From: Tetramitus jugosus
Taxonomy: Eukaryota; Protista; Heterolobosea
Direction of reading: 5' to 3'
Assembly (NCBI GenBank): GCA_937625935.1
Contig: OW569383.1
Coordinates: forward strand, 379,333-443,332
Length of the DNA stretch: 64,000 nt
Every line of letters begins with the position of its first letter. Position 1 is the first letter of the stretch. Both the position numbers and the translations under genes were made by a program. Under the pieces are notes generated by a model. The model was not told the origin of the DNA. It made no database searches and worked only from the letters and a program-made list of their open reading frames with translations. Positions 29,817-56,800 of the stretch are shown piece after piece.

Positions 29817-32800
29817 TTATGACTGCCAAGCATTTCTTCTTCTTTCCAAATAGGGAGAAGTCTTGTTGATCAAGTTAGCTTCACTCAATGAGCTAGTGTC
29901 CGGAGATGACATGTCAGACATTTCTACATCCATCGGCTGTGTGTATTTCCTCGACAACATGGTTCTTAATTTGTTGTCATCTTCGTTCTTAACCTTGTAC
30001 ATTCTTCGAGCAAAACTAGAGAATTGTTCGTCTTCTAACGACGAGACATTCTTGTCCAGAACGAACTCAAACTTCCATGCGTCCAACTTGGCTTGTTTCT
30101 GTTTCTTTTTTCTCTTGGTGAGTATTCTCCAGAGTAAGAGGAAGGAGATGACCAGTAGCAGACCTAACAATAGCAAGAGGAATAAAGACCCAGCTATGGA
30201 TGCCACTGCAGTAACAACTCCCTTTGTAAATTGTTTCACTTCTTCAACAGCAGGAGTCACAACGATGAAATTTTTTGGAACGTCAGTAATGTTGCAAGTG
30301 TCATACTGGCATCCAATCCATATTCTATCGATTAGGACTGACACCACGGAATCTGAAACCTTTCTTTGAGGTTGGGTCAAACTTTGAGAAACTGCCAGGT
30401 AGCCTGTCGACAACCTTTGTTTGAACACATCAACGAGAGTTCTTTCGGTCTCGAATGACAAGGTACAAACTTCAGAGTATCCTTGAATCACTTCGACATC
30501 TATTCGCCATGGTTCATCAGGAAGTGGATCAGAAGAATTAGTGGACACGTTTTGTGTCATGAGCCAGTTGTTAAATAATGTCTCGTTCATATGAATCATT
30601 TCTACCTCTGGTCTGACGAGCTTGAGGGAGAGTGTGTGTGGAACACCAAGTGAAAATCCAGGACAAGATTCAGTGGCAGTGGAAACTAGGGATCCTAATT
30701 GATATGACAAAGATATTGTTTTCACGTCTTCAGAAACAACACTTACAGATGCTAATACATAATAGGAATCGTCATGATCCGATATATACCATAGTTCAAC
30801 AAGGTTACCTATCTGTCCCGGATCAATAACAAATTCGATAGAGAGTTGCTGATCAACCTGATCCACGAGTGCCATCTTGGATCTTACCATAGCTCTCGGA
30901 TTCGAATCAGAGATGTATGAAGTGATTCTGGACATGGAACGACTAGAAAGCTCTTCAAACGGAATCCAGTCAATTGACAAAAGATTGTTCTGGGTTGGCT
31001 CAAAACTATTTAGCAAAGTATCTCTATCAAATGAATCATAGAATGTAAATAAGCTCGTATCAACATAGTAGAAGAATGCAGGTGAAATTCTTGGCGTAAA
31101 TTCTCTGTTTAGCATTGTAACAGTTAGTTGTACTACATGATTATTTGCTTCTTCAAAAAGAGGAACCTCACACTCTACATGTCGAACATATACATTATTT
31201 GAAAGAACCTCTATTTTCATCTCTTCTCCATTATTTTTCTTCATCAGGAACGAACAAGTGATATTCCGATCTGTAGAGAACCATGATCCATGAACAGTTA
31301 TAATGTCGCCATGTTTAGCTGTAGTTGGATTGATACTGTGTATATGCGGCTGAAAGTAAATCAGTGAAATTCCAGGTTGAGGAATAGGAGCAGAGCTTGT
31401 GACAGAATTGATAATAATCCGTGTAAACTCGACAGTCGATTCGCCATTTGGCCATACGAAGGATGGTTTGAAACATGCATCTCCAGTAAGCCCTATTGAG
31501 CGGCAGTCAAAAAGTTGGGCAGTTACATTGACTTTTGCATTTGTATCCTCCAGTGTAACTCTCGATTGACTTTCTATTGTTAAGTGTAGTCCAGTTAACC
31601 GAATCCAAGTACTCGTTATAGAATCTGCAGGCACTCCAGAAGGATATAAATTATCAATATTCGGTTCCCATTTACCAAGAATTGTAAACTTTTTACCGTT
31701 TAACTCACTAGGATAGGTCGAAGTGAATAAGTCCATAACCTTGTTACGCGGAATTATAGAGAGTTGATTTTTCGAAATATCATTGAGGTATACATAGGAA
31801 TCGGACTCCAATTTCACACCAGCAAAGAATCCATCGTAGATATCAACAAGAATTAGTTGATTTCCGTGTACTCGTGATACAAAATTCCTGCGCATCACAT
31901 GAACTTCGCCATTTACAAACAATAGCGCTTGGACATCTTCTATCGAAGGGAACGACTCTAACACAATTAGTTCTGAAACTTGATTAGACATAGAAACTTG
32001 AAGTATCACCATTGCACCACCCTGCTTCCTTTGTGCTAGAATAAAGAGAGTATCGCTCAGTGGGTCAATAGTAACAAACCGGCTGTCATTTTCTTCCAAA
32101 AAAGGCAAATATTCCGTTAGTGTGTAAACTTGATCATTATTCTTGTTTGTTAAACTCAGAGAATGAATTGTGATATCCTCCTTGACCGATACAATTATCA
32201 ATGAAACTTTTCTGACAAAAACTGCGCAAGTACTCATATCTGGGATTGCCCGAGCAGGTGAAGCCCTCAGCAATGTTAATGATTGAGAGGAAACAGTGTA
32301 GATTCCTTCGTCTCTTATCAGATAGAAAGATCTTGAGTACTCACTGTAGAGTGTCTTTGAGGAGTTCACTGAAGTGAAACTAAACACAGCTCTGCCAAAA
32401 TTCATATCCACTAAAGAAATATTCTGCAGGTACCCATCAGGGGTAGAAACAAGTAAATATTCATGGCTCAATTCACTTTCACTCCTCACAATTTCACAAT
32501 CTTTTCCAGAAAAACGTGGTTGACAAAGACAGTTATCAGGTGCAATGCACTCTCCTCTTCCACTACAGACACTAGTTTGATTACCCAAATCACCGAAGCA
32601 GATGGGAATATCACATATATTAGATACATAACCATCGGCACAACTACAGAAGTCAGGTGTTCGGCAAGATCCATGACCAGAACACACAGTTGATTCATTT
32701 GAGAGTGAACCGTGACACTGAACTATTTGGCACAGATCACCAAAATAACCATCTAAACAGGAGCAACTATTGGGTTCAACACAGGCACCAACTCCGCTAC

Positions 32801-35800
32801 AAACCAACGGATTTGAGGCTGCTAAATCATAACAAATAGGAACAGAACAATTAGTTCCAGTGTATTCGTTTGTACACAAACAAATATCTGGAGCTGTGCA
32901 GTTTCCTTTACCTGAACAAACCAAACTCGAATTTTGGCTAAAACCGAAGCAAATATTCAGCTCGCACCTATTTCCAGTTTTCCCATTATCACAAGAACAG
33001 ACATCAGGAGCTAAGCAGTCTCCAAATCCGCTACACACACTTCTGTTATTTCCATCAGTACCAAAACATATGGGAATTTCACACTCTTCCCCAGTGTACC
33101 CACTAGTACATTTACAATTATCAGGCAATATGCACGACCCATGTCCGTTACAAGTGTTCGAATCTGTTTCATTCAATCCAAAACATACATTGATTTCACA
33201 TTGTAAACCAACTCTTCCTGCTCTACAAAGACAAGAGTCAGGAGCAATACAAGTACCATTTAAGTATGAACAAACCGCAACATCGGTCTCTAGCTTTCCA
33301 TAACATAAAGGAGTATCACAATTAGGTCCGGTGTATCCTGCTTCAGCAAAACAAACACAATTGTTTGGAGAGACACATGTTCCATGACCTCCACAAACTA
33401 ATGGATCAGTCTCATTTCGTGAAGAGCAAATGTTTAGATGGCACTGATCTCCTGTTCGACCTTCAAGACATTCACATTTGTCCACGTCCGTGCAGGTCCC
33501 ATTAGAGGAGCATACTGCAGGATCAGTCTCATTAACTCCAAAACACGTAGATAGCTGACATTCTAATCCTGTTCTTCCGAATGTTCGACTGCAATTGCAT
33601 GTATCGGCATACACACAAGTACCAACACCAGAGCAGACATGGGGGAAGTAAGCAGCAACTCCGTAACATTTTGGAATTGAACAATCCGCTCCTTCCCATC
33701 CATAGGAGCAGTTACATTTATCAACAGAGTAACATACTCCATGACCACTACAAACATTTGCATCAGATTCATTTCGCCCATAACAAATATTCAACTCACA
33801 TTCTGACCCTGTTCTACCTTCACCACACAGACATACATCTGTATACAGACAGTTTCCTCGACCAGAACATACATCCTCATAATTATTGGCAGCTATTCCA
33901 AAACAGATTGGAATATTACAATCAAACCCAGTCCATGAATTCCAGGTGCAGTTGCATTTGTGGGGTGCCACACATTTTCCATGTTGATTACACACGAAAT
34001 CATCTGTTTCATTAAAACCAAAACAATAATTTAACTCACAATTGCTACCAGTTCTGCCTTCACTACACCAACAACCATCCGGTTCATAACAGAATCCGTA
34101 TCGAGAGCACACTGATCGGTTCGTGCCCCAAATACCATAACATAAGGGAATGCTACAATCTCTACTCACCCATCCGTCCGTACAATTACATTTATCTGGC
34201 TGATAGCAAAGGCCATGACTTGAGCATACCTCAACATCAGTTGTATTCACTTCAAAACAACTTGGATAGAAACATTCAAGTCCAGAATATCCATAGTCAC
34301 ACTCACAGGTATCTGGAGAGAGACAGTTGCCATGATCAGAACAGACATTTGAAGTATCATTGGAAAGAATTCCAAAACATATTGGATATTGACATTGAAG
34401 CCCAGCATAGCCAACATCACAAATGCATTCATCAGGTGAACTACAAATGCCATGCCCTGAACAGACTGAACTATCAACGTCCAACTTTCCATAACAATTG
34501 ACATATTGACAATCAGTTCCATTGAATCCTGGCGAACAAGCACACTGATCTGGCAGTTTACAATATCCACGACCATTACAAACAAAAGTCGAATTCAACT
34601 CAAGGATCCCGTTACATACATTCTGTTCACATTCTGCGCCACCGTAACCACGAGTACAGACACAAAAATCAACGTTAATACAATTTCCGTGTCCTAAATG
34701 TGAGTTGCATGAAGGAGGAGTAGTGGTCAAATTTTTTCCGTAGCATGTCAACGGTATGCAGTCACCTTTGGCATCAAGTTTCGTTAGACAAGTGCAATTA
34801 TTTGGTGCAACACACGTCCCATTCTTTCCATAGCCACAAGAGGCAGGATTTGTTGCATTCAGTCCGAAGCAAATTGGTGTGCTACAGAAACGGTCAGTAT
34901 ACCCAACGGAGCAATTGCATTTGTTGGGCGATACGCATGTACCATGGCCGGAGCAATCCAAATTCGTTGGGAGTACTAGTTCGATAGAAGTAGCTGGTGC
35001 TTGATAAATCGTTTCAACACCTGTGATTCTATCGAAATATCTACTATAGCATACAGGATAGCTGCAATTTCCTCCTGTAAAACCAGGAATTGGAGAAGAG
35101 AGACATACACATGTCTCTGGCTCAAAACAATACCCTTTACCGCTACAGACTAGGGGATCATTTGTATTCCTACCATGGCAAATTGTGTATTGACATCTAT
35201 CACCATTATAACCTGTTGTACAATTACATTCTCCTGGACCTATGCATGATCCACGAGAAGAGCAGACACTGGGATCGTTTGACAACAACCCAAAGCAATT
35301 AATATATTGACATCTGTCTCCTGACCATTTTTTAGGATCGCAAATACATGTGTTTAAGTATTTGCACTCTCCACGACCAGAGCACACATTTGGAGTGTCG
35401 GTCATGTTGTAACCAAAACATGATGTGAATTCACAATTGTTTCCTGAGAAGCCTGGTTTGCATACACATGTGTCTCTCGCAATACACGATCCATTTCCAG
35501 AACAAACATCTGGATCATCTGCTAGGATATTGAAGCAAGTGACTCCATTGTATAGTAACATTGAATGAGAAAATCCAGTTGAGAAGAACTCTGCGTACCG
35601 TTCCGTGAATTCACCACCTACGATTCTAGGCGTCATATGGTCCGCATTGGACGAATCTCCCATCTGACCATTTGAGTTTGCACCCCAAGCAAATACTTTG
35701 CCAGCGTCAGTCAGTACAAATGTAGTGCCACTTCCACTCGAGCTAATACTCACAATATTGTAACCCAAGAGTGCTTCCAATCTTGTTGGTAGACACTGAT

Positions 35801-38800
35801 CAATAGTTGAGTTAATACCTAATTGGCCTCTGCTGTTGGCTCCCCAGCACCAAACTTGTTTTTTCAAAGTGAGCGCACAGCTGAAATATTCACCACCAGA
35901 CACTTGAACAACAATTTCGGATTCTAATCCTGATACTTTAACGGGCACCAAGGATTTTACTGAGGGGTGCCCTTGACCTTGTTGACACCTCGAATCATCA
36001 CCCCAACTATATAAAGTACCATCGACTGTTGTTGCCAGTGAATGATAAGCACCAGCAAACACTGTAGCAGCATTTTTAATGCCAAATATACTTAGTACAC
36101 GAATTGGTCGACCACCTGACTTGATTGAATCTTGTGTTCCATCCCCCAGTTGACCCAGTTCGTTATGCCCCCATGAGTAGACTGAACCACTCGCACTTAG
36201 GCCCAAACAGTGAACTCTACCGCATGAAACAAAAGACATCTTGGTCGACTTGAGCGGCATTACTAAAACTGGTGATTGTGATGAAATGATTTGTTGTCCT
36301 ATTCCGAGCTGGCCTTGTTGGTTATTACCCCAACTGTACAATGAACCTCCAGTAGTTGTTACAATGACCGAAGAGTATCCAACTGCGACATGAGTTGCTG
36401 TAAGGTTCTTCTTGGAGAACTCAGTCAACACCAAGCTCGTTCTACTGACTGGTGTGTTGTCTCCCAATTGTCCTAAAGAGTTTGCTCCAACTGAGTACAT
36501 TCGACCATCACCACGAAGAATGATTGAGAATTCTTGACCTGCACCAACATATTGAACCGGAATGGTATTCAGGCTAATTGATTTGATGATTTTGTTTGTA
36601 CTATGTGTAGTTCCTTGAACTAATTCACCTTTGGATCCTTTTCCAGTTCCAAAAAGAAAGCCCATTGTAACTCCATCGCAGTTGCTTCCCTTGCGGTTCG
36701 GATGACAAACACAAGTATTATTTGGAATACAAACACCATGACCGGAGCAAACTGCTGGATCAATGTTGAGGATGCCATTGCAAGTCACGCCACTACAATC
36801 ACTCAACAAGAATTGATCTCTACACATGCAGCTATTATCATTCACACATTGTCCTCTTCCAGAACAAGAATTCTCATCATCTGCTAAAAATCCGAAGCAT
36901 GTCGTACCATTGTACAAAAATAGAGTGTGTTCGAATGAAGCAGCAATGTGATGAATAAATCTATGGGAATACCTGTTCACTACTGGTACTGGTAGAGATT
37001 CCATGCTTGAAATTTCACCATTTCCCAGCTGGCCAACATTGTTGATTCCCCAAGAGAGAGATGATCCATTTGATTTTAGGACAAACACGTAGTTACGCCC
37101 AGAAAATATCGATCTCGAATCTTGAATTCGCTCATCGTAGAGTCGTACAGGATATCTTCTACGCTGGATACTAGTGTGATTATCTCCTATTTGCCCTCGA
37201 GATGCCCCTCCCCAAGCAAATACTGATCCATCAGCAAAGATTACATAGGTGTTCTCTTCGGAACCACTAATGGAAATGGGCGTCTTACCCTTGAACTGAG
37301 AGTTCAAGAGAGGAGTGGGTGAATATCTATTGAAGGAAACACCATCACCTAGCTGACCGAATGAATTTGACCCCCATACATACAACAGTCCATACGGACC
37401 AATGCCGATGACATGGTTCCATCCAGAAGCCAGTTTCGAAATTACTATTTGATCAATTACACCGACTCCCACTTGCAAGGGTGTGGACGAGAGCTGATTA
37501 TCACCATTTCCTAATTGACCAGCATCATTTTGACCCCAAGCATATACGGTTCCATCGTCGATAAGAACTGCCGTGTGAGCTTCTCCACATACTGTTTGAA
37601 CCACTTTCCGACCCTGAAGATCTCCGGATACGAGAACTGGTTCATGCTTGTCAGCAAAGTCTCCCAAACCCAACTGACCTCGATAGTTGTATCCCCAAGT
37701 ATAGACTTGTCCATTAGAATCCACAATGACAGTATGAGCGACACCATTACATCCTGTGACTGCCTTTACGCCACTCAATCCTAAAGGTGCTGTCGGTAAT
37801 AATCTTGTTATGGTTGTTCCATCTCCCAATTGACCTCTATCGTTCAGACCCCAACCAAACACTTCACCAGTTACAGTAATTGCGATGGAATAGTCCTTAC
37901 CAGAAGAGACATGAGAAACAACAGTGCCAAATAGCTCACCTCCAACAGCAACCGGATGTTTTTGTGGTAAGTTATAACCATTTCCTAATTGGCCAATTGA
38001 TCCTTTACCCAAACTAAAGGCATATCCATTTACTACTTGACTACAATCATCACCAATATATCCGGGAAGACAAACACACGAATCAGCTGCAAGGCATGCT
38101 CCTCGACCAGAACACACCCGAGTATCGTTAGGATAATAATTGAAACAATAGAATCCACTACAATCTGGGGCATTATAGTCCGGAGGACACTCACAGTGGT
38201 CTTGAGCAGTACAATTGCCTTGAGAGGAACAAACACTTGGATCGTCCGCGAATTTCCCAAAGCACGCAGTACCATTGAACAAGTAGAAAGTAAAGTTGTC
38301 ACCAGAAGCGACAGTAGTAGGATATATATTTGGAAATTGTTGTTGAACTTGCACCACGCTTCCTACTATAGTTTCGCTGTAGTTACCATTTCCAAGTTGA
38401 CCGAATGAATTTTCACCCCAAGAGAACAAGGTTCGATTATTGGTTAGCACATGAACAAATGATTCTCTTGCACTCACTCCTAAAATACGAACATCCGGCA
38501 AAACTGTTACCAAAGTGGGATTTTTTTTGCTCGTAGTTGTTCCATCACCTAGTTGGCCATGCCTGTTGTTACCCCAGCTATATAGTGAATTACTCATAGT
38601 TATTGCCATCGAAAAAGAGGAACTAGCAGTGACTTGTGACACTGGTTTTCCATACAAACCAGGAATCTGTATTGGCAAAAACTTGTCGATGTTTGTGGTA
38701 TCTCCCAGTTGGGATTTGTCGTTCAGTCCCCAACTATACACAGCTCCATCCGAATCTAAGGCCAAAGAATGGAACTTACCAGCTGCAATCTGAATAATTC

Positions 38801-41800
38801 TTTTCCTGGTCAAAATAGCTCCGACTTTAACAGGTGTGTACTTTGATACAAAATCTCCAATTCCCAATTCTCCATCAAGGTTGAAACCCCAAGTGTATAC
38901 GGATCCATTGAAAGAAAGTGCCATGCTGTGGTATCCTCCACAAGCGATTGCAACAATGTCTTCTGTCAATAATTCACCGGTGACCTGAGTTGGAGTCAAT
39001 TGCAAATCTTGAGGAGAGTTCATACCTATCTGGCCGTATTGATTGGAGCCCCAAGCGAAAACAGTTCCGTTACTATCTAGGGCCATTGCGTGATTGATAC
39101 CACCACATAGTCCAATAATCGTCGAACCAGAGAGAATATGTTGTTGAACTCCTTTTGATATAGTTGTTCCGTCACCAAGTTGGCCATGCCAATTTTTACC
39201 CCATGAGTAAATCTCGCCACTCACCGTCTTTATGAGAGAATACTCGTAAGAAGGAGCCACTAAATTAACTGGTGTAGAATAGAAGAGAGTTGATCTCTCA
39301 ACAGTAGGACGAAAGCCTATACCTCTTACACCTAACTGAGCGAACGAATCTTGACCCGAAGCGTACAGATAACCGTATGACTCCACTTCACAATTCGATC
39401 CCGAGAAGCCCTGGAAGCAAACGCAAGTATCTAACGAAAGGCATCTTCCGTGTCCAGAGCATACATTAGGCTCTGTCGCGTTCACTCCAGAACATTGTGC
39501 CACACTGCAGTCTTTTCCTCCGTAAGTAAAAGCACATTCGCATCGGTCCAACGCAGTGCAATTGCCTCTCCATGAACATACAGATGGATCATCAAATAAT
39601 ATTCCAAAACAAGATAGTCCAGAATACAAAAATAGTGAATGTGTTGTTCCAGCAGACACACTTGTAATGTATCTTTCAGGGATTGTGTTACCGACTGCCG
39701 AGGAGTAATTTCGACTCATAAATGTATAATCTCCCAACTGACCATTTGAATTGACACCCCAACCATGTGCTGTTCCGTTTGATACAACCAGAATTAAAAA
39801 GTTGGCATTCTTTCCCACTGAAATTGACAGAATAGGATGATCAATATCTAATGATACAATTTCAGGATAGTTGCGAGAAATGACGACAGAATTCTCTCCC
39901 AATTGTGCACTCGGAGTATTGGACCCCCATGAGAACAGAGAACCATTTCGCAAGAGGGTGTACGAGCTCTCGATACCAGCAGCAATAGCTATGACTGGTT
40001 CCTTGCCAAAAACATCATTAGAATGAACTCTATATGGCAAACTCCTACTCTTCGTTGTACCGTCTCCTAATTGACCCATGTTATTTCTACCCCACGAGTA
40101 GACGGATCCATCTTCATTCAGTGCTAGAGTATGATAATTACCTGCTGCTACCATCACTATTTTCTTTATATTGAGCACACCTCCGACGACAGTAGGGAAA
40201 GAAACAACATTCATATTGTTCCCGATTCCTAATTCGCCAAACGTATTACTTCCCCAGGCGAACACTCTACCTGATGCTGAAATAGCTAGTGAATGAGTAT
40301 GACCACAAGCAATATCCACAATTGTTTCCAAAGCAAAGTACTGTGTGATATTGACAGGTACTAAAGAAGGCTCAGTATTTCCAGTACCCAATTGTCCATG
40401 AGTGTTAGTGCCCCAGGAATAAACTTGGTGATTTGAATCAACGGCTAATGTGTAGCCTGAACATGCAACGAGCCGTATGATAGATTTGTCCTCAAAAAGT
40501 TGAATCGGATAGTATCGAGTGTAAGTTGTATTGTCACCAAGTTGTCCTTGGTCATTATTCCCAAAAGCAAACACGCCTCGATCTAAACTGACAGCATATG
40601 AACTGCCTGCCCCAGCACTGACAAAGCGAATTTTCTGATCTGTCAATAAACTTGCCTGTCTGGGGTAATTTCGTGATATAAAGAATCCATCCCCCAATTG
40701 AGAACTAGTATCATCTCCTGAAGCAAACATAAATTGTTGATCAGTGCTGTTGCATGTAGTACCGTAATGACCGGAATCACAAATGCATGTATCTTCGTAT
40801 AAACACGATCCATGTCCAGAACAAACTAAAGGATGCGTTGCTGGAAGTCCATGACATGTAGCGATCGAGCAATTTGTGCCACCATAATCTCCCATACAAA
40901 GGCAGAAGTCATCGGATGTGCATATTCCCCGGAAAGAGCACACACTGACATCATCGGCCAGAACTCCATCACAGAATATTCCATGATATATCATTAACGA
41001 ATGAGAAGTTCCTGATGCAAATGAGAGAACAGAACTACTTTGATATTCTTGTCGATGCATTTTGAACGGATATGAGATGATCGATGATACATTACTTATG
41101 GTCAAGTGCCTGTTGGCATTGTTTCCCCAAGCATAACTCAATCCATCACTTGTTGTGACTTGAACACTGTCTGACCAAACACTTGCTGAAAGAACTGTGA
41201 TATTTTGAATTCCAATGACTCTCACAGGTGTTGTTGACATTGGAATTGTTGAATTGATTCCAAGTTGACCGAATGAATTGTCACCCCAAGCATACAAGAA
41301 TCCATCTTCAGCAACTGCGTAAGCTGTTTGTCTTCCTGCTGCAATTTTCTTGACTGATAATCTCTTCAGCAGACCACCAACACGTCTGGCATGATAAGTA
41401 TCTGTGCGAGTTGTTGTTCCATCTGCTATCTGACCTTTCGAATTGTCACCCCACACAAATACTTCACCTCTATCTGTCAGTGCCATTGAATAACTCTCAC
41501 CTGCTGCAATTGATATCACTTTCTCAAATCCAAGCAATTCTCCATGGCCAGCATTTGCTTGAATCTTTCTTGTTTGTGTCAATGATGAATCATATTCGGA
41601 AAGACCGCCAATTTGGGTCTTGTCATTCTGTCCCCAACCATAAACACTACCATTTGTCGTTCGGATCAATAGATGTTGATTTCCACAGGCCAACTCTTCA
41701 ACTTTTCCTCCTCCGAAATTGTCCGAGGGAAGGGCGAGTGTGTGAGGGAGAGCAGAATTTTTTCCCCAGTAGAATATTTTCTCTCGATCGTCCGTTAGAG

Positions 41801-44800
41801 CAAACGCATGCGAAGCGCCAACACACACGTGCACAAATTTTGAACCACCCAAGATTCTAACTGGACGATTTCGATTTGTGAATGAGCCATCACCCAACAG
41901 CGACAACAAACTTGTGCCACCTCGACCCCAGGAGTACAATTCTCCTTCTATCGAAACTGCAAACGAATTCTCTGGTCCAGCAGACACATGTTTCACAAAC
42001 TTTGCGTGGGTCAATGGATAAGCTGTTTGAACAGCAACTGTCTGACTGAAATAATAATCGTCGCCCAATTGTCCCCAATTATTGGTTCCTGTCGCATATA
42101 ACAATCCATACACGATATCCTCACACTGAAGACCCGAGTGTTGGAAGGAACAAGAACATGTGTCAAGGGCAACGCAATGACCTTTACCACCGCATACATG
42201 GGGATCAGTCGCACGCAATCCAAAACAAACATTGATGCTGCAATCATTGCCCAAATATCCTGCATCACACAAGCATTCATCTGGTCCTACACACGATCCT
42301 CTCCTTGAACAAGCATTCTCATCATCTGAAAGAATTCCAAAACAATATGTTCCATTGTAAATCATCAATGAATGAGCACTTCCAGATGAGAATGAAACAA
42401 TGAAGCTTGTTTGATTCTCAAATCTGACAGTGGGATGAGGAAACAGCACTTTGGGCATTGTTGTTTGCAAACTCAAGTGCCTGTTGGCATTGTTTCCCCA
42501 CGCATAACTAATCCCATCACTTGTTGTGACTTGAACACTGTCTGACCAAACACTTGCTGAAAGCACGGTGATGTTTTGAATTCCAATGACTCTCACAGGT
42601 GTTGTTGACATTGGAATTGTTGAATTGATTCCAAGTTGACCGAATGAATTGTCACCCCAAGCATACAAGAATCCATCTTCTGCAACTGCATAAGCTGTTT
42701 GCCTTCCTGCTGCAATTTGTTTGACTGATAATCTCTTCAGAAGACCACCAACTCTTCTTGCATGATAAGTATCTGTGTTGCTTATTGTTCCATCTGCTAT
42801 TTGACCTCTCGAATTGTCACCCCACACAAATACTTCACCTCTATCTGTCAGTGCCATTGAATAACTCTCACCTGCTGCAATTGATATCACTTTCTCAAAT
42901 CCAAGCAATTCTCCTCTACTTTCGTTCCCTTGTACTGGGCAAGGAGTATCGAGCTGCCCACTGTACCACACTTGTTCTCCGAGTTGATGATGAAGGTTAT
43001 TACCCCAACCATACACCTTACCGTTTGATGTTAGAAGAAGTGTATGTTGAGCTCCACATACCAGAGTCTTGATCGTTGTGTCGACATAATTCTCCATGGG
43101 TGGGCGAAGCACAGATGGAAGGTTGCTATTTCCTCCCCAACTGAGAACACTGTTGTTTCCTGAGGCTGCAGCTACATATCTTGCACTTGCGCAAGCTGCA
43201 ACAATATTGTACCCGTTTAAGATCGTCTTGGGACGATTTCTTTGGGTCACTGAACCATCTCCCAGTAGACTTGACGCACCCACACTTCCTCGACCCCATG
43301 AATAGAGCACCTCAGCTACAGTGAGAGCGAATGAATTGTCAGAGCTCGTAGTCAAGAACTCAGCATACTCACCGTAGGACAATGGAAACCATGTTTGAAC
43401 AGGAAGCAGGCGATCAACAGAATAGTCATCACCAAGTTGACCATGGCTATTATCACCCACGGCATACACAAGACCAAACACTGGCTTGTCACATTTAATT
43501 CCCAGGAACTGGGAGTCGCATGAGCAAGAGTCTAGAGCAACACAATGTCCATTTCCAGAGCAAATGTCAGGATCAGTCGCATTCAATCCATAACACACAT
43601 TGATGCTGCAATCATTGCCCAAGTATCCTGCATCACACAAGCATTCATCTGGACCAACACATGCTCCTCTCCTTGAACAAGCATTCTCATCATCTGAAAG
43701 AATTCCAAAACAATATGTTCCATTGTAAATCATCAATGAATGAGCACTTCCTGATGAGAATGAAACAATGAAGCTTGTTTGATTCTCAAATCTGACAGTG
43801 GGATGAGGAAACAGCACTTTGGACATTGTTGTTTCCAAACTCAAGTGCCTGTTGGCATTGTTTCCCCAAGCATAACTCAGTCCATCACTTGTTGTGACTT
43901 GAACACTGTCTGACCAAACACTTGCTGAAAGCACGGTGATGTTTTGAATTCCAATGACTCTCACAGGTGTTGTTGACATTGGAATTGTTGAATTGATTCC
44001 AAGTTGACCGAATGAATTGTCACCCCAAGCATACAAGAATCCATCTTCAGCAACTGCATAAGCTGTTTGCCTTCCTGCTGCAATTTTCTTGACTGACAAT
44101 CTCTTCAGAAGACCACCAACTCTTCTTGCATGATAAGTATCTGTGTTGCTTATTGTTCCATCTGCTATTTGACCTCTCGAATTGTCACCCCACACAAATA
44201 CTTCACCTCTATCTGTCAGTGCCATTGAATAACTCTCACCTGCTGCAATTGATATCACTTTCTCAAATCCAAGCAATTCCCCTCGATTTGCAGTTGCTTG
44301 AATGAGAGTGATGGAACTGATTGAACTGCCAATTTGACCCAATTGATTATACTTATTGGTTCCAAATCCATACACTCGCCCTTTAGATGTTCGAATCAGA
44401 GTATGTTGCCATCCACAAGCCAATTCCATCACTGTGGAGTTGTCATAGTTGTTTGAAGGCGCTGATCGAATTGTTGGAACTGCACCGTTGCTTCCCCAGA
44501 CATATATCATGTTGTCTTGAGTGACAGCAACGGCATAGTCAACACTTGAGCACATGTGAATGACATGAGAATGGTCATTCATTATTCTCACCGGTCTGCG
44601 TCTAAGTGATATTGTACCATCTCCCAACAATCCTCTATTGACATTGACTGAATCACCACGACCCCATGAGTACAGTGATCCTTCCAATGTCAGTGCATAT
44701 GATGTTTGATTTCCTGCTTCAATACACTTTACGTACGCACCATGACTCAAGGGATAGAAAGTTTGTGTTGGAAGAATGCGCTGTGGATCATCAAAGTCAT

Positions 44801-47800
44801 CTCCCAGTTGACCATATTGATTGTTGCCAATGGCATACAAAATGCCATAGGATGATAATTCACACTTGGCACCTGTTGTAAAGACTTCACAACTGCATGT
44901 ATCAAGCGCAACACAATATCCCTTACCACTGCATACATTAGGATCAGTCGAATTTAATCCATAACAAACATTGATGCTGCAATCATTGCCCAAGTATCCT
45001 GCATCACACAAGCATTCATCTGGACCAACACATGCTCCTCTTCTCGAGCAAGCATTCTCATCATCTGAAAGAATTCCAAAACAATATGTTCCATTGTAAA
45101 TTATCAATGCATGAGCACTTCCAGATGAGAATGAAACAATGAAGCTTGTTTGATTCTCGAATCTGAAAGTTGGATGAGGGAACAGCACTTTGGGCATTGT
45201 TGTTTGCAAACTCAAGTGCCTGTTGGCATTGTTTCCCCACGCATAACTAATCCCATCACTTGTTGTGACTTGAACACTGTCTGACCAAACACTTGCTGAA
45301 AGCACGGTGATGTTTTGAATTCCAATGACTCTCACAGGTGTTGTTGACATTGGAATTGTTGAATTGATTCCAAGTTGACCGAATGAATTGTCACCCCAAG
45401 CATACAAGAATCCATCTTCTGCAATTGCATAAGCTGTTTGTCTTCCTGCTGCGATACGAATCGCTGCATTCTTTTGAAATTGATGCTCGACCTTTCTACC
45501 ATTGGAAGTCACAGAATTACTCACTGCATCGCTTGCTACTTGCCCTCTTGAGTTGTCACCCCACACAAATACCTCGCCTCTGTCAGTCAACGCCATTGAA
45601 TAGTGATTTCCTGCCGCGATAGATACTACTTTTTTGAGACCAAGTAACTCACCGTTGTAGGCATCTCCTTGAATCTTCGTTGGTACTGAGACTGTTTGAC
45701 CATACAAAACATGGTCACCCAATTGTTCAAACTGGTTACTTCCCAATCCATAGATAGAGCCGTTTGTAGTGCGAAGTAAGACATGTTCTCCACCACATTC
45801 CAACTGGGTGATGAAGTCTCTCCCATCAAGCGTATTGAGTGGAGCCGCTGAGAGAGTGTTATCCCACTTGAATAACAAATTATCTTCGGTAATTGCGATA
45901 CCGAAAGTAAGGCAAGAACAAGCACGAAGAATACGTGGTGTATTCGGTAGGATTGGATATGGCCGATTTATCATACTTACTGAACTATCTCCAAGCCGTC
46001 CTCTACCCCAAGAGTACAACTTGTTAGCCATGGTGACAGCATAGGAGTTTTGGTCACCAGCTACTAACGACTGTGCATACTCACCGTAAGACAATGGAAA
46101 CCATGTTTGAACAGGAAGCAGGCGATCAACAGAATAGTCATCACCAAGTTGACCATGGCTATTATCACCCACGGCATACACAAGACCAAACACTGGCTTG
46201 TCACATTTAATTCCCAGGAACTGGGAGTCGCATGAGCAAGAGTCTAGAGCAACACAATGTCCATTTCCAGAGCAAATGTCAGGATCAGTCGCATTCATTC
46301 CATAACAAACATTGATGCTGCAATCATTGCCCAAATATCCTTCATCACACAAGCATTCATCTGGCCCAACACATGCTCCTCTCCTTGAACAAGCATTCTC
46401 ATCATCTGAAAGAATTCCAAAACAATATGTTCCATCATAAATCATCATGGAATGAGATTCTCCTGCAGAAATCCCAACGATAACACTTGTTTGAATATTA
46501 GACGCAAAGATCTTAAGTGGGTAGAAAAGCACATCTGTCGTTGTATTCAGTATTAAGTGCCTGTTGGCATTGTTTCCCCAAGCATAACTCAATCCATCAC
46601 TTGTTGTGACTTGAACACTGTCTGACCAAACACTTGCTGAAAGCACGGTGATGTTTTGAATTCCAATGACTCTCACAGGTGTTGTTGACATTGGAATTGT
46701 TGAGTTGATTCCAAGTTGACCGAATGAATTGTCACCCCATGCATACAAGAATCCATCTTCAGCAACTGCATAAGCTGTTTGTCTTCCTGCTGCAATTTTC
46801 TTGACTGACAATCTCTTCAGAAGACCACCAACTCTTCTTGCATGATAAGTATCTGTGCTACTTGTTGTTCCATCTGCAATCTGACCTCTCGAATTGTCAC
46901 CCCACACAAATACTTCACCTCTATCTGTCAGTGCCATGGAGTACCTTTCACCTGCTGCAATTGATATCACTCTCTCAAATCCAAGCAATTCTCCTTGACT
47001 CACATTCGCCTGAACAAGTGTGATTCTATCTATGTCCGCTCCATACACGTATTTGTGACCCAGCTGTTGGAAGTCATTCAAGCCGTATCCGTATACTCGG
47101 CCAGTATTTGTTCTGACCAATACATGATCAGTACCACAAGCACACTCAACAACCAATTCTTCAACGCCTTTGTCTTCTGAGTAGGTTAGAACTGTGGGGA
47201 GATTGTAACCTGTTCCCCAAATAGTAGTATTATGGCGAGTAAGTGCAATCGCAAAACCCTTTGCCGCACAAGCTTGAAGCACTTGTTTTGTGTTTGTCAT
47301 AATCCTAACAGGTCTGTTTCTTTGAATACTACCGTCTCCAAGGAGAGACCCACCAGAGCCCCCAAGTCCCCAAGAGTAAAGTTCCCCTTTTGTCGTGATA
47401 GCGAAGGAAGTGTGCCTACCCGTTGCGACATAGGAAACGTGAACCCCATTAGTAAGGGGGTACGAGGTTGGAGATGGGATAGAAATGTACAAGTCATCAA
47501 GGTTAATACCTAACTGCCCGTAATCATTATGGCCAACAGCATACAGAAGGCCGTGAACGGACTCGTTGCATCTGGAGCCTAAATACATTGTTTGACAAGA
47601 ACAAGTGTCCTGGGCGACACATGCTCCGTGACTCGAGCAGACTCTCGGGTCAGTGTGGTTTTTACCGAAGCAGATATTGGTGCTGCAATCATTGCCCAAA
47701 TATCCTTCATCACACAAGCATTCATCTGGCCCAACACATGCTCCTCTCCTTGAACATGCATTCTCATCATCCGAAAGAATTCCAAAACAATATGTTCCAT

Positions 47801-50800
47801 TGTAAATCATCAATGAGTGAGCACTTCCTGATGAGAATGAAACAATGAAGCTCGTTTGATTCTCAAATCTGAAAGTTGGATGAGGGAACAGCACTTTGGA
47901 CATTGTTGTTTCCAAACTCAAGTGCTTGTTGGCATTGTTTCCCCAAGCATAACTCAGTCCATCACTTGTTGTGACTTGAACACTGTCTGACCAAACACTT
48001 GCTGAAAGCACGGTGATGTTTTGAATTCCAATGACTCTCACAGGTGTTGTTGACATTGGAATTGTTGAGTTGATTCCGAGCTGACCGAATGAATTGTCAC
48101 CCCATGCATACAAGAATCCATCTTCAGCAACTGCATAAGCTGTTTGTCTTCCTGCTGCAATTTTCTTGACTGACAATCTTTTCAGTGGACCACCTACACA
48201 TCTGGCATGGGTTGTGGAACTAACTCCATCACTCGCAACCTGACCTCGTGAATTATCTCCCCAAACATATACCTCTCCCTGATCTGTCAACCCCATTGAA
48301 AATGCCTCCCCCGCTGCTACTTGAATGAAAAAGATGTTGGCCAGTGCTTCTCCGAGTGCCACATTTGATTGCTGTTCTACTGGTATACTCACAGTGGTAC
48401 CGTAGACCCTACTGTCCCCTACTTGGTGGATCCAATTGCGTCCCCAACCGTAGACTTTGCCTGTTGAGACGAGCAACAGCGCGTGTTGAGAACCACATTC
48501 TAACCCCACGACCCGCCCACCATTGTATTTGCTTGAAGATGAGGGCAAAATAGATGGAGAATTTGCATTCATGCCCCAAACATACACTGTATTATCGCTG
48601 GTCAAAGCTAGTACGAAAGTCAATCCAACACAAGAATCAACAACCTGAGGCATTGCTTTCAGAATTCTCACTGGTCGATTTCGTTGAGTCGTAGTTCCAT
48701 CTCCCAAGAGACCAAGCCAATTATTTATAGAGGTACCTGAACCCCATGAATATATTTCTCCATCCACAGTTAGGGCGAAGGAGTTTTCTATGCTCGCTTC
48801 CACTTGTTTAACATACTTCTTTGTGAGTGGATAGTAGGTTTTCGTAGCAGGTAAGTAGCGAGTTCCATCATAGAAATCATCTCCTAGTTGGCCTTTGTCA
48901 TTCCTTCCAAGAGAGTACAAGAGGCCAAACATTGATACTTCGCACCTCTCTCCTGAAAAGAACGTGTCACAGGAGCATGAGTTATAATCGACACAGACAC
49001 CACTTCCAGAGCAAACATCTGGATGACTCTCATTTAATCCAAAACATACATTTATGTTACAATCAAGACCTAAGTAACCTGGTGAACAGACACATTCATC
49101 TGAAGATACACATGATCCTCTTGAGGAGCACACCTCATCATGTTCAGATAGAGTACCAAAACAGAAAGTGCCGTTGACTAACACTATAGAATGAGTCGAA
49201 GAGGCTTCAGCTCCGACAATAAAACTAGAATTATAAGGGTTTGATACTAAAGTTGGTGTTTTTGCAGAAAAGTTGGTCTCATCTCCCAATTGAAACGCTG
49301 AATTGTCTCCAAATCCCACCGCCGATCCATTTTTTAAAGTCACCAAAACATAATTGCTCCATTTTCCGGTCGTGATGAGCAAAGCATTTTCAATAGAAGT
49401 AAGGGTTGGAGATCTATGAGAGAGAGATGAGTTAGTTCCCAATTGGCCGACCTCATTTCCGCCCCAGGACAAGAGTTGCCCTTCCGATGTGATGGCATAC
49501 GAGGAATCTGCGCCGGCAGAAATGCTTACAACTTTCTTCCTCAAAAGCAATCCTTTCACTTGACGCGGATGTCTATTGTTAATTAATGTTCCATCCCCCA
49601 ATTGACCGTCTGAATTCCGTCCCCAAGAGTAGACATCCCCTCTGTTGGTCAAGGCTAAGCTATGGTACTGTCCAGCGGATACCGAGATAACGTGCACATC
49701 AGAGAGTACTCCCTTGATAGGGCTAAAAGCTCCTACCCTCACAGGAACAGTTTCTATCTTGTCTCTCCCATAACCAACGGCACCATAGGACGAATCATCA
49801 CCAAATCCCCACACTTGACCCTCTTGTGTTAAAACCAATGTATGCAGATGACCACAAGCCACTTGTACCGGTGTTCCTGTAATTCCAGACAACAGTTGTG
49901 GAGAACTATTATTTGCAGAGTTACCTATACCCATTTGTCCAGAGATAAGTCCCGACGTTGTTCCGTTGGCAGTATTGAACCCCCACGAATATACCTCGTT
50001 GGTGCTCGCTATTGCTACTGTATGATATGTACCACTACAGATACTCAACACTTTTTTGTTCAGCCAAACTCTGCTTGGATAGTGTCTGTTTGAGATTGTT
50101 CCAGTGCCTAATCTGAAATGGGAACCACTTCCCCAAGCAAATAAATCTCCTTGTGTAGAAATGGCGAACGAAAGATCAGATCCAGAAGAGATTTGTTGGA
50201 TTATTGTTTTTCTCAAGGATTCATAGGGTCTCACCCACTTAGTAGCGGGTATTGAATCACCAGTTCCTAGTTGACCGAGATGGTTGTTTCCTACAGAGAT
50301 CAAAGTACCAGAGGCACGCTGTTCGCAATTGTTTCCCGCGTAACCCACAAAACATTTGCATGTATCATATGCAATGCATGTACCATGACCCGAGCAAACT
50401 TCAGACTGAGTGTTGTTGTACTGACGACAAGTCGTAAACTGACAAGATTCACCATAATAATTTTGGTCACATTCGCAAGTGTCGGTGTCTGTGCAGTTCC
50501 CTCGAGTTGAACATGCCATCGTATCATCCATAGGATAATCAAAACAGAAGGTAGTGTTGAAGAGGACAATACTAAACACATTCCCAGTGGATGCGGCTAC
50601 AATTTTTCGATCCTTGAAGGGGTGTACAACGGGAGTTGGGACCGTCTTTGAGATTGTAGAACCATCCACTGCCTGCCCTTGAGAATTCAATCCCCAAGAG
50701 AAGGCGGAGCCATCAGCTGAAATAGCTATAATCGTTTGATGACTTGCACTCACAGAGACTATCTTCACCCCAATTAATCCAGAAACTAGAGTAGGATACA

Positions 50801-53800
50801 ACCTTTTTGATTCCGTGCTGTTGATTCCTAGTTGCCCTACGGAATTATCACCCCATGAGTAGATTTCACCAGTAGCCGAGAGAGCGTACGAAGAAAAAGC
50901 ACACGCGGTCACTTGAATAATAGGGGCTCCCAACATTGATAATGAGACTCGAGATGGATGCACACTTGGAATGGTTGAGTTTTGTCCTAATTGCCCTACA
51001 GAGTTAGAACCCCATGTGTAAACCTCCCCGTTTCCACCTAGAGCTATACTATGTCTATCACCGACAGCAACATGAACAATGCGTATTGATGACAGTATTC
51101 CCTTGACAGGACTAGAAGTTGCAACCGGTGTAGGAACTATGCGGGTGTAGGCGTCACCCACACCCAGACGTCCAAACTCTCCATTTCCCCAAGCATAGAG
51201 CTTCCCAGAAGAAGAGCGAGCTATTGCATGGTGTGTACCACAACTCACAGCAACTATTTTCTCATTGTTGGCCAAAGAAGGAAAAGTGATTGCTCTTGGA
51301 TTTTTCGAGTAATAGTAGGTGCCCAAGCCCAACACACCCGAGATAGAAGGTGCCCAATGAGGATAATTACAAGGACAAGCAGTTTCACTACAAGGTTTGT
51401 AGTTGTCCTTGCAGAAAATCGTCGCGTCAACAGTATTATAGCCCCAAGAGTACACTGTACCGCTAGAAGTAACAGCGATTGCATGATACCTTCCTGCACA
51501 TGCACTAACAACCTGATGGTTGGTAAGAATATTCTTAGGTCTTATTGCTGTAGATGTTGTTCCGTCACCTAAATTGTAGTAACTATTTTTACCCCATGCA
51601 TACAAGGCATTCTTCCTTGTGATAGCCAGAGCGAAATCCCAACCTGCTGTTATGAACTTAACATGCTCCCCGTACGAAAGAGGATAAGATGTGCTGGTAA
51701 GAACCGTTTGACTTAAATAGTAGTCATCCCCCAGTTGTCCTGCTGTATTTGATCCGACAGTGTACGTCTCTCCATACAACCAAACACTACAATCTGAACC
51801 TGTGAATCCAGAGGAGCACGAACAGGAGTTGTGAGCGATACATATTCCCTGTCCTGAACACACCGAAGAATCTGTTGAATTTGTTCCAAAACAGGTTGTA
51901 AAACCACAATTCGGACCAAAGTAGCCCGACTGACAGATACACATGTCGGTTGCAACACAGATTCCTCTCCAAGAACATGCATAAGGATCATCAGAAAATA
52001 ATCCATAACAATAGGTTCCATTCAATAGAATCAGAGAGTGCCGCCCCCCTGAAGAAACAGATACTATTGACCTGTTTGTGTAAGTTTGAGGGACAGGATT
52101 CACATACTTTTTGAACATTGGTGTAGGATGAGTCATCGACTCACTTCTTCCGTTCAACAGTTGGAAGTTCGATCCTTTTCCCCAACCATATCCATCTCCG
52201 TTCAAATGTCCTGCAATAACACTGTCCTCAAAAATGCTAGAGGACAAAGAATGGATTGATGTTAAGTTCAGCTTGATAGGGATGGGAGCAGGACCGATCG
52301 GCGAACCAATGCCCAGTTGATAATTCGAATTATCTCCCCACGAGTACACACTTCCCTCTGAACTGAGTCCATAAGATGATTTTGCACCTGCTGATATAGA
52401 TTTGAAAGCTACTTTGTACATGGTTTCCTTGTAGAGCATCTTCGGAAATCTTCTCAATTTGGGGATTTTCTCAACTTCATCACCAATCTGTTCGTTGTCA
52501 TTCCTTCCCCATACGTATATCTCCCCTTTCTCACTAAGAGCCATACTATGATACAATCCAGCAGCTATCGAGATTATTTTAATATTGTCGAGAGTTCCTC
52601 CAGAGTTTAGATTTTGGGCCACCGGAACAGGAACCAATTCCTGAGCTCCAACACCATATTGTCCATTACCTAATTGACCAAACTCATTATTTCCCCACCC
52701 CCATACTTCTCCGTTCCTCAATATGACCAAACAATGATACAACCCACATGAAACTGAAACTGCTTCTGCCGGGATTCCTGACACCTCATGAGGTGAGGTT
52801 CTTTGATAAATGTACCCCTGTCCTAAACTACCGATAATTGTGGGTTGAGAGATGCACAGAGATGGAGAAGAGTTAGGACAACATTGTGTATCAGAACACC
52901 AGTTATAGAAGATAGTACACGTTTCACAAGACCTATAGCTGTACCGCACATTACCGTTCAATGTGTTAGAACCCCAGGAGTACACCTTTCCATCTGTTGA
53001 AACTGCGGCAGCATGATACATGGAGGCAGAGGCTGAATTAAAAGTATTTGTCGAGAAAAGTCGCGGTCTATAGTATAAACCATAAGCTGAAGTTCTTCCC
53101 CACTCAAATATTTTTCCATCAAGAGTGATGGCCAACGAGAAGAATTGGCCTGCCGATATGAATTTGACATAAGCATCTGTGGACAAAGGAAAAGAGGTCA
53201 TCCCTAACAGAGAACGACTCAAATAGGAATCATCACCTAGTTGCCCCTGATCGTTGTACCCTGCTGCATACACATACCCAAAGACTGTTTTCTCACAATT
53301 CTCACCGGAATACAAACCATTGGTACAAGAACAGATATTATGAGCAATACATGTACCCCTACTGGAGCAAACACTTGGGTTTGTGGAATTTACCCCAAAA
53401 CAGATCGTGGCTTCACATTCTTCCCCAAAATACCCAGAATCGCAAGTACAAATATCATCTGATGTGCATCTACCTCTCCAGGAACAAACCAACGGGTCAT
53501 CAGCCAACATACCGAAGCATCGTGTGCCATTAAACAACAAGAGAGAGTGCGTAGAACCTGCGCCAACTCCTACTAGACGAGTCGTAGGGAAGTGTATGTT
53601 GACTGTTTGAGCCACAGGTTCCAATCTTTGCTCTGTGGTTTTATCTCCTAGTATTGAATAAGTATTCGTACCCCAAGAGTAACCAACACCCTCAATTGTG
53701 ATGCCCGTAACCCAGTTAGCCGATTTGCTCGGACATATCTCTCTAATAAACACACCCTCCAAAAGCCTCACGAGTCCAGGTATCTTTCGATAAGATCCAA

Positions 53801-56800
53801 CAACTAGTGAGGAGTCTCCTAACAGGCCACCGGCGTTGTGTCCCCATGAAAAAACTGTTCCATTCTTTGAAACTGCGAAAGAAGTACTCATGGCTGCTGA
53901 AATGTGCACAACCTGTTTGGGAAGTGACCTTTCCAATAGAACTGGGACATTTTTTCCTGTAGTAGTGTTGTCTCCCAACTGACCATTTGGATTCGCTCCC
54001 CATGAATATACTTCTCCAAAAGAACCTAATGCAAGCGAATGATGGGCACCTGCTGCTAACTTGATAATGTTCGAGAGCCCCCACACCTTCTGGGCCGTCC
54101 ATGAGTGGCTCGTCGTTCCTGTACCCAGTTGACCATAGGTCCCGTAACCAAACGAGTAAACAGTTCCAATACTGGTGAGCAACAAAGAATGAGAGGTTCC
54201 ACAAAACACTGAAATAGGAATTTCTCCATTTTCCATTCCAATAATCTGTGTTGGTGTGTCATTAAATGATGCACTAGTGACAAAAAGACCCCAACCCCAG
54301 ACTGTTCCATCTAGTTTAACTACTACAACACGATAATTACCAGCACAGCAATCACCAACGTTGCTCATTAAATGATGTGGTTTAGTATGATTGTATTTCG
54401 ATCCATCTCTTAGTTGCCCCCAGGTAAAGAGTTCTCCATCCTTTGACAGAGCAACGGAAAACGATACTCCAGCTTCCACCTTCTTCAGTACCTTCTTGGT
54501 AAGAGAACCTTCCAGGAGCACTAATTCTGCGGTGTATCCTGATGAAGGAATTTCCTCGCTTGCTAGTTGACCGTAGTTACTAAGTCCCAGACCATACCCA
54601 ATACCACTCACATCATTCTCACAATTCGAACCGGAATAGCCAGAGTGACAAAGACATAAATCAACATCTGTACAAACGCCTTTTCCTGAACAAACATTTG
54701 GAGCATCATTGTCAATACCGTTACATTGAAAAGAATTACAATTCGAACCCGAGACTGCTTCTTCACACGAACATTGATTGAAACTCGTACAATTTCCATG
54801 ATAGGAACAAACTAACAGATCATCACTCAACACTCCGAAACATGAGAGAGAATTATTGTAGATCACGAGAGTATGCTGGCTTCCTACTGCTAAACCAACG
54901 ACCTGGCGGTCAGGAAAAAAAAGCCCATACTTGTTGGGGATGAGTTGCTTCGTAGTTGTTCCATCCCCAAGTTGACCATATCCATTACTTCCCCACACAT
55001 ATGCAGTCGATTGAGAAATAACACCAACTGAAGTGCCATAAGTTGATATTCTACGAGCAACATGACCCGAGAGAGTGGTGACAGGTCGATAAGTAGGCGA
55101 GTATTGGATGGTGAGAGAATTAATTCCCAATTGACCTTCCAGGTTACTGCCAGCAGAGTATACGATACCATCGGCAATAACGTATGACGTGCAACAGGAA
55201 CCTGCTATCTCTGTTACCTTTTTTCCGAAGAGAGGAGACGTATTCATAGCTTTTGGCTTCCTTACAGCTGTCCCAGAAGAACCGTCTCCCAACTGACCAT
55301 TCCAGTTGTAACCCCATCGGTACAATGTTCCATCATCTGCGATAGCCATCGAGAAGTGGCTACCAGCCGTTATTGCGGCCACCTTCCGCTTGTAAAGCAA
55401 ACCAGTCAATAGCACAGGCCTGGGGAGATATCGTCTATCTGCTACAAGTCCGTCACCCAGTTGTCCATGAACATTGTAACCCCAGGTCAGGATAGTTCCA
55501 TTTCTTAACATTGCTATGCTGTGATAGGCACCACAAGCAACAGATACCACCTCTCCCCCCAATAGTGATCTTTCAATCAAAAACGGAGACGAGAAGTGAG
55601 AATTGTTTCCTGTTCCAAGTTGACCATAGCTATTATCACCAAACGACCAAACAGATCCAGTGTCATCAACAACCATGGAATGTATGTATCCTGCACACAC
55701 TGACACCACTTTTCCCTGAAACGGTCCAGGTATCAATACTGGGGTGAACTTGGCAGTGAGAGATCCATCTCCTAACTGTCCTCTGTAGTTCTCTCCCACT
55801 CCGAACAACGAACCATTTGACAACAACACAAGAGAAAAAGATTGCCCAACTACTGCGAAGTGGACAGATTGTTGAGAAAAGGCCGAAGAAACGACAGGTG
55901 ACAATCGTGTCAATCCAGACTTTCCGAGGTTATCTCCGAGTTGTCCCACTGTATTCTCTCCTGAACCATAGAGAAATCCTTCATCTTTTTTTTCACATGT
56001 AAGGCCAGAGTATCCTTGATCACAGAGGCAAGTATCGATAGTCATACACTGTCCATGACCAGAACACACTGTTGGATCAGAAGAATTCAACCCATAGCAA
56101 AATGGTAAACTACAATCTCCTCCAGTGTATCCGTCAATACAAGAACAGACATCATTCCCTGTACAGTTACCATGGTTGGAACATACCAAAGGATCAGATT
56201 GGAAAATAGAAAAACAAATAACCGAATCGACTAGAAAAAGAGTGTGGGAGGAACCGATAGCAACCTGAGAGATTTTGCTTAAAGAGATTGGAGGTACAAT
56301 GTTCTGGACATTTGTTATGTGCAAGCCTGTTGATCCTATTCCAAACTGGCCGTTGGAATCTGTCCCCCAACCACAAAGTTCGTTCTCTGTGTCAACAGCA
56401 AAAACATTCTCGGCCACAAAACTAACATGAATTGTCTTGATCGGACGACCAGATAGTATAGTTGCTTCGACAGGGACCGTCGAGTATGATGTTACGGCGA
56501 TGTTTCCAAGCATTCCCGCATTGTTATCTCCCCAAGACATGAGTGTTCCATTAGAAAACACTGCAAATGTCGATCTGGGCCCGGCCCCGATCGCGACTGT
56601 AACTTCTCCAAGCGTAATTTTGTAAGGCGAAGGTACTGTTGCTCCATCAAGGTTACTCGAACCTAGTTGTCCTCTGTCAGAGCTTCCCCAAACATAAACT
56701 CCACCCTTAGATTCCAAAGCGATGTTATGTCTCTCTCCTGTTGCAATATCAACCCATTCCAGAGTCTCTCCACTATCTGGGTCCTGCTTGCTGATCATTT

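Follow-up and report, generated by a model that had tools for sequence, protein, structure and literature searches.

Patchy concerted evolution within an expanded group of RCC1/EGF modules in a giant gene of Tetramitus jugosus

Introduction

Clustering of repeats by gene over position is the hallmark of concerted evolution. Here we describe an array of this kind in a window of 64,000 nt (the whole stretch analysed: GenBank assembly GCA_937625935.1, contig OW569383.1, positions 379,333 to 443,332 of the forward strand) from the soil amoeba Tetramitus jugosus (Heterolobosea). It comprises modules 7-12 of a giant RCC1/EGF protein. Concerted evolution by non-allelic conversion is an already known process, described in protocadherins and in the abalone egg receptor VERL, and the array is a new case of it. 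In the vertebrate clustered protocadherins, conversion between tandem ectodomain units homogenises one region (Noonan et al. 2004, reviewed in PMC3966226). The likeness lies in tandem paralogous units of which one region is homogenised and the rest is diverse. However, in protocadherins each unit is a variable exon or gene of its own, and homogenisation extends over whole ectodomains. The units described here all belong to a single exon of one protein, and their tracts take in parts of one propeller, with a membership that differs from block to block.

In VERL, repeats 1-2 are free and repeats 3-22 homogenised, with positive selection and a known ligand (PMC2704960). Both cases concern a giant surface protein (a predicted one in Tetramitus) with large tandem repeats, some of which are >95% identical via conversion or unequal crossover while others are independent. 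In VERL, however, the division is by whole repeats and selection and ligand are established, whereas here it runs within each repeat. A divergent island kept inside otherwise homogenised paralogues is also found in RHCE/RHD, with its two-locus balance of conversion and selection, the Innan model (reviewed in PMC3966226). That system consists of two genes with a short divergent exon, whereas here six intragenic copies have about 40% of the unit diverged to saturation.

In cassette-based antigenic variation, as in the subtelomeric variant surface glycoprotein (VSG) genes of trypanosomes, pilS/pilE of Neisseria and vls of Borrelia, a silent archive feeds an expression locus. Our array resembles these systems in that conversion acts on a surface-protein gene, and its subtelomeric position resembles that of VSG. 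In contrast to them, a genome search turned up no silent donor copies of the variable segments, there is no receiving expression locus, and conversion erases differences in the conserved part. Within Heterolobosea, the array is a clean and testable example of concerted evolution inside one gene. Natural controls are available in relatives having one, four and six copies of the module and in a wild strain that shows conversion after strain divergence.

Layout and identity of the blocks

Modules 7-12 are all in frame within one 9,239-codon open reading frame (57536..29817, minus strand). Their repeat unit of ~1.37 kb consists of the second EGF repeat, the propeller and the first EGF repeat. Protein identity among the six modules is 54-73%, compared to 27-39% with the other ten modules. 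Blocks were assigned to blades by mapping on an AlphaFold model of module 10, as follows:

40857..49046, minus strand: expanded module group 7-12, supported by protein identity within the group versus the other modules
49046, 47672, 46307, 44966, 43595 and 42227, minus strand: unit starts of modules 7-12
44085..44282, minus strand: block A (blade 4) of module 10; also 46994-46797 (module 8), 42914-42717 (module 11) and 41543-41346 (module 12); divergent in modules 7 and 9
47919..48161, minus strand: block B (blade 5 and most of blade 6) of module 7; then 46796-46554, 45455-45213, 44084-43842, 42716-42474 and 41345-41103
43719..43841, minus strand: block C (end of blade 6 and N-terminal strands of the closing blade) of module 10; also 47918-47796 (module 7), 45212-45090 (module 9) and 42473-42351 (module 11)
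43596..43718, minus strand: block D (first EGF repeat) after module 10; others at 47795-47673, 46430-46308, 45089-44967 and 42350-42228
43356..43595, minus strand: block E (second EGF repeat and two propeller-closing strands) of module 11
46068..46307, minus strand: block E, module 9 copy
44283..44738, minus strand: variable N-half (blades 1-3) of module 10; others at 48818-48354, 47444-46995, 46082-45654, 43370-42915 and 42002-41544

An earlier note on this DNA had assigned blocks A-E to particular modules, and these memberships proved correct: DNA identity is 91-99% in members and 46-65% elsewhere. Modules 8, 10, 11 and 12 are 93-98% identical in block A, where 7 and 9 reach 54-65%. In block C the figures are 93-98% among 7, 9, 10 and 11 and 50-55% against 8 and 12. 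Copies of block D that follow modules 7-11 share 91-97%, compared to 51-52% for the one after 12. Block E shows 2 differences in ~240 nt between modules 9 and 11 (99%) and is 47-63% identical otherwise. The note had also described the C-terminal half as near-identical in all six modules. This holds for block B (243 nt), which is 95-99% identical among all six with mostly synonymous differences; the remaining blocks are shared by subsets only. The N-halves of the same modules share 46-53% of their DNA and 35-46% of their protein sequence. The longest exact repeat is 244 nt.

The synonymous sites of block B are homogenised as well (proportion of synonymous differences, pS, 0.04-0.16), and block B is ordinary in single-copy paralogues, where its amino acid identity is 52% compared to 60% for the N-half. 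Therefore, purifying selection was rejected as the sole cause of block identity. Since block B is not more conserved than the N-half in these paralogues, it is not an intrinsically constant scaffold. We saw no indication of GC-biased conversion, as GC content at third codon positions is not raised in the homogenised blocks.

Conflicting histories of the blocks

Two markers in block C were said in the note to occur in all four combinations, and they do, each combination once: E/F in module 7, Q/F in 9, E/V in 10 and Q/V in 11, with several sites backing each split. Blocks B-D of these four modules contain 13 informative sites, of which 8 join modules 9 and 11, 4 join 7 and 9 (3 of them within 14 nt) and 1 joins 7 and 11. 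The minimum number of recombination events (Rm) among the four is 4, and 44/78 site pairs are incompatible. The longest-match permutation, run per pair, gave p <= 0.014 in 14/15 module pairs. When homoplasy was simulated on a single tree, the probability of reaching at least 5 conflicting sites was 0.016 when 10% of sites could mutate and <= 0.003 when 20% or more could.

Approximately unbiased (AU) tests with the paralogue modules included point in the same direction: for N, A, B, C and D the tree of every other block is rejected (p<0.05), and for block E three of the five are. No single duplication tree fits all sites, and the ectopic conversion proposed in the note is upheld, both by the incompatible block trees and by changes shared in a wild strain (X4, described below) that postdate strain divergence. 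In trees with the modules of the closest paralogue, C51, blocks B and D group by gene and not by position; block B is 95-99% identical within the C40 gene versus 72-80% to C51.

One might argue that nested tandem duplications and deletions with a single history, and without conversion, produced the patchwork. Such a history would agree with the two-module offset of 2,712 nt that links D8-E9 to D10-E11, and with the N-halves of modules 9 and 11 being sisters in the tree (bootstrap 90). However, near-identical blocks abut synonymous-saturated halves in the same copies, the block trees are incompatible with Rm=4 among only four copies, and both E copies share strain-specific changes, so we hold this history to be highly improbable.

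Paralogues and relatives

The genome contains ~10 related giant genes; our paralogue analysis covers loci L001-L032, and C33, C13, C30 and C29 are known by coordinates alone. In C51 (8,381-aa frame), the paralogue nearest to this gene, the module type that makes up modules 7-12 is present in four knob-less copies; the same type is single-copy in C22, in C51b and in the environmental contig L033. The single copies of C22 and C51b carry a Cys-rich knob of ~50 residues in blade 2 (L024, C51:162675-166586; L026/L027, C22:206357-212251). Modules 4 and 5 in the window have such a knob as well. The knob has been deleted from each of the ten expanded copies, so that the N-halves of modules 7-12 all lack what their single-copy counterparts possess.

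C51 has homogenised tracts of its own: block A is 100% identical between copies pB and pD, block D 93% between pA and pB, and patches of the N-half 92-98% in pA, pB and pC. No internal homogenisation was seen in C22, C51b, L033 or the metagenomic relatives P0001-P0004. Therefore, homogenisation accompanies the expansion and occurred independently in two genes, and, as the N-half patches of C51 demonstrate, it is not bound to the C-terminal half. P0001-P0004 and L033 (5,300-7,100 aa) have the same architecture of RCC1 and EGF units with a transmembrane (TM) helix, and the family reaches beyond this genome. Protein searches returned no six-module orthologue, the best matches being 30-38% identical, and a JGI scan found one single-module relative.

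Strain comparison and reliability of the assembly

The T. jugosus assembly paTetJugo1.1 was made by hifiasm from 37-fold PacBio HiFi data, with a quality value (QV) of 56.7, and is incompletely phased (PMC11106597). The incomplete phasing, and a second haplotype several percent off in module 10, could suggest that repeat collapse or haplotype chimerism created the mosaic. The quality of the HiFi/hifiasm assembly argues against it, as does the length of the longest exact repeat. Additionally, short-read contigs from the same organism (X3) matched the unique halves with 0 differences, an unrelated metagenome has the same junctions and the C51 paralogue has the same kind of pattern. We thus regard an assembly artefact as having next to no probability. 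The second allele is revealed by the X3 contigs, in which module 10 differs at 5/110 and 10/123 bases (window 44294-44931); a one-codon insertion at 44768 in this second haplotype is present in X4 and X7 too. Two further differences in X3 contigs, at approximately single-haplotype depth, may come from an allele, an orphan copy or a paralogue: at 44259 two nucleotides are deleted, and at 46700 three are inserted. Low-depth joints in X3 were not taken for rearrangements, since they resemble Hi-C ligation products.

X4 is a groundwater metagenome from a separate study and represents an independent strain. Its contigs cross the D7-E8-N8-A8, E-N9-A9-B and E-N11-A junctions, and taken together the X4 and X7 contigs, none of which spans the array, have modules 8, 9 and 11 joined as in the reference. 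Block E is represented in X4 by a single 210-nt contig (43381-43590) at depth 29.9, which has exact 30-nt overlaps with the N11 contig (depth 13.4) and the N9 contig (depth 16.8), contig depth being a rough guide to copy number; the overlap coordinate of the N9 contig agrees with the module offset (46122 - 2712 = 43410). The block-E contig carries 5 synonymous changes where both reference copies agree, 1/5 of which is also in X3. Because the X4 copies of block E share these five strain-specific changes, homogenisation took place after the strain lineages split; the evidence consists of contigs from one metagenomic strain. A block-B contig of 142 nt at depth 84 fits five or six identical copies.

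Divergence between strains is uneven, reaching 5-7% in module 8 and 0.4-0.8% in the module 11 N-half in wild strains. An X4 joint between 44830 and 47787 was not taken for a rearrangement because it is a paralogue cross-match, and the block-A variants at 42801, 46859 and 46861, which match module 12, outside the stretch compared, were left out.

The variable halves

Between N-halves, synonymous differences have reached saturation (pS 0.70-0.84; proportion of nonsynonymous differences, pN, 0.38-0.46). The N-halves are therefore old, and none was recently copied from another. A genome search with 40800-49100 as the query found no near-identical copy of any N-half elsewhere; its off-site near-identical copies were conserved blocks only, on C45 and C44. 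To their positional counterparts in C51 the N-halves are 39-52% identical in protein, compared to 65-70% for the same part of the flanking modules 6 and 13. Among the strain variants listed (40/207), those in the N-halves are 9 nonsynonymous to 3 synonymous, and those in block E 1 to 15 (Fisher p=0.0003).

The earlier note had drawn a further conclusion, that the constant blocks are recombination anchors which shuffle variable half-propellers, possibly for receptor diversification or antigenic variation. A subtelomeric surface protein gene would be a suitable place for it, anchors that are 95-99% identical would permit unequal crossover, and module number does vary between paralogues (1, 4, 6). 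However, the N-halves are mutually unlike, unique and in place: the reference contains no duplicated or moved N-half, N8, N9 and N11 have the same neighbours in the X4 and X7 contigs, and the donor archive of N-halves that antigenic variation would draw on was not found in the genome. The idea of a constant scaffold is contradicted by C51, which homogenises its N-halves, and by the ordinary conservation of block B in single-copy paralogues. Moreover, the organism is a free-living bacterivore (PMC11106597). The exchanged material is near-identical sequence, not the variable halves, and shuffling is in our judgement very unlikely.

Proposed explanation

The comparisons above demonstrate that one module type has expanded, that conversion between its copies was patchy, that this happened independently in two genes and that it is recent. 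The best explanation, and probably the right one, is intragenic concerted evolution with partial escape. A module type that is single-copy in other family members has multiplied in tandem, to four copies in C51 and six here, after loss of the ~50-aa Cys-rich knob. The step from four to six could have been an unequal crossover of two modules (8-9 giving 10-11), a duplication suggested by the sister N9 and N11 and by the D8-E9 match to D10-E11; loss in C51 is also conceivable. Non-allelic conversion between neighbouring copies repeatedly overwrites patches of tens of bases to a few hundred, and hence gives blocks with different membership and recombinant haplotypes. Its route may be ordinary homology-directed break repair via template switching, with no dedicated system. 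Blades 1-3 may have diverged beyond the identity needed for conversion and so stay distinct, possibly helped by selection against overwriting or by relaxed constraint, and would change by point mutation in place, without swapping. They thus appear to have escaped conversion and presumably evolve fast under relaxed or diversifying selection. Young protein repeats generally diverge fast under relaxed and positive selection (PMC5120217).

Several observations weigh against parts of this explanation. Taken alone, the clustering of informative sites is of borderline significance (p=0.057), and the order of the modules is confirmed junction by junction only. The C51 paralogue tolerates homogenised N-halves. 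Average omega in the N-halves is 0.08-0.17, as initial estimates with saturated dS, and the 9:3 ratio of variants equals the neutral expectation and agrees equally with relaxed constraint and with diversifying selection.

The last two points, omega well below 1 and near-neutral polymorphism, would also suit a wholly neutral version of the same conversion, with knob-less modules as length-adding spacers, relaxed blades 1-3 and a patchwork arising from feedback between identity and conversion rate. It is favoured, too, by the knob being deleted in all expanded copies, by the eroded module 9 with its deletions and divergent block A, and by the different placement of the homogenised patches in C51. 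Nevertheless, no copy has lost its frame or its core RCC1 motifs, the module 10 model is of good quality, strain divergence is uneven, and blades 1, 4 and 5 have the E/N, N/A and A/B borders, respectively, just ahead of their first strand. We consider neutrality possible, if rather unlikely. The position of the borders could also mean that selection filters conversion blade by blade, retaining tracts that replace entire blades, and that blades 1-3 give each module a binding surface of its own, which varies among alleles through balancing selection; since the block borders of C51 mostly miss blade starts, blade-wise filtering is a lead only, and we find this reading doubtful. If true, a free-living amoeba would possess a polymorphic multi-specificity receptor for recognition of prey or kin.

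Copies outside the array

A fragment of the array has been captured elsewhere in the genome. Its source is:

47613..48197, minus strand: C-half of module 7 and start of module 8, with a 585-nt, 96% identical copy on C45

The copy (L023:1504-2088; G000:C45:348711-349295) lies inside a multi-copy transposon-like element with a weak DUF4218 match (E 5e-5, below the cut-off), which we take to be CACTA-like. Element copies on C29 and C21 are 98% identical, and the one on C29 is uninterrupted at the capture site, that is, an empty site. The capture junctions have 4-7 nt of overlap, and the captured copy is a mosaic, of module 8/10 type at the block A end and of module 7 type after it. The C45 fragment is a Pack-type capture in a heterolobosean. 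Since DNA of blocks B-D has ended up in a transposon-like element, the array does act as an ectopic template.

C44 contains a decayed 152-nt copy of the end of block B (92%, with a 4-nt deletion) in unrelated surroundings (L012:1501-1652; G000:C44:264083-264234). Other parts of the gene occur as clusters of 70-94% identical fragments at C33:152338-153749, C33:453034-453538, C13:7053-7517, C13:569439-569890 and C30:6961-8720; in these clusters several pieces are joined in gene order, and similar pieces lie near both ends of C13. Block B was therefore rejected as a special donor, because other gene parts are scattered in the genome as well. Donor copies of block B elsewhere in the genome, which the note had proposed to look for, came down to the near-identical conserved-block fragments on C45 and C44. 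The off-site copies are side products of template capture and do not form a donor archive.

The giant gene and its surroundings

The features of the host gene and the contig end are:

29817..57547, minus strand: main exon of the giant RCC1/EGF protein (open reading frame, Pfam domains, sequons)
57613..57688, minus strand: probable first exon, a hydrophobic leader resembling a signal peptide
57612-57548, minus strand: probable GT..AG intron of 65 nt between leader exon and main exon
32484..35537, minus strand: at least 23 EGF-like units beyond propeller 16
30135..30197, minus strand: predicted single TM helix (Kyte-Doolittle maximum 2.86 at residue 9123)
63301..64000, plus strand: telomeric (TTTGGG)n array, contig end, 5.6 kb from the start of the giant gene

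The protein of ~9,250 aa has 16 modules, each of two teneurin-type EGF repeats and an RCC1 propeller (Pfam RCC1/WD40_RLD, EGF_TEN). Propeller 16 is followed by a run of 23 or more EGF-like units, and a stalk leads from there to the single predicted TM helix and a short tail; 135 N-glycosylation sequons were counted. Pfam, AlphaFold and Foldseek agree on an RCC1-like beta-propeller of seven four-stranded blades with RCC1 repeats. The model of module 10 has a predicted local distance difference test score (pLDDT) of 88 and a predicted template modelling score (pTM) of 0.90, and its Foldseek matches are the propellers of RCC1, HERC2 and UVR8 (1i2m at E 3e-30, template modelling score 0.76). These solved propellers (RCC1, the HERC2 RLD, UVR8) are intracellular; they share the seven-bladed fold, whereas here we predict an extracellular chain of 16 propellers. 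Judging from the leader and the TM helix in the sequence, the gene product is a predicted type I membrane protein, most likely a long adhesion or recognition receptor, although the receptor role is putative. A literature search found no paper on this protein family, and its predicted extracellular RCC1/EGF members of 5,000-9,000 aa in Tetramitus could mediate recognition of prey or kin.

Between the giant gene and the telomere, an open reading frame for an atypical protein kinase (58005-59600, Pkinase E 2e-10) lies in divergent orientation. Short internal telomere-like TTTGGG runs occur at 62432-62450 and 63084-63104, upstream of the terminal array, amid decayed sequence resembling open reading frames. 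The other neighbouring genes are ordinary: they encode a DUF4116-repeat protein (26105-27286) and a WWE-HECT E3 ligase (18449-22846).

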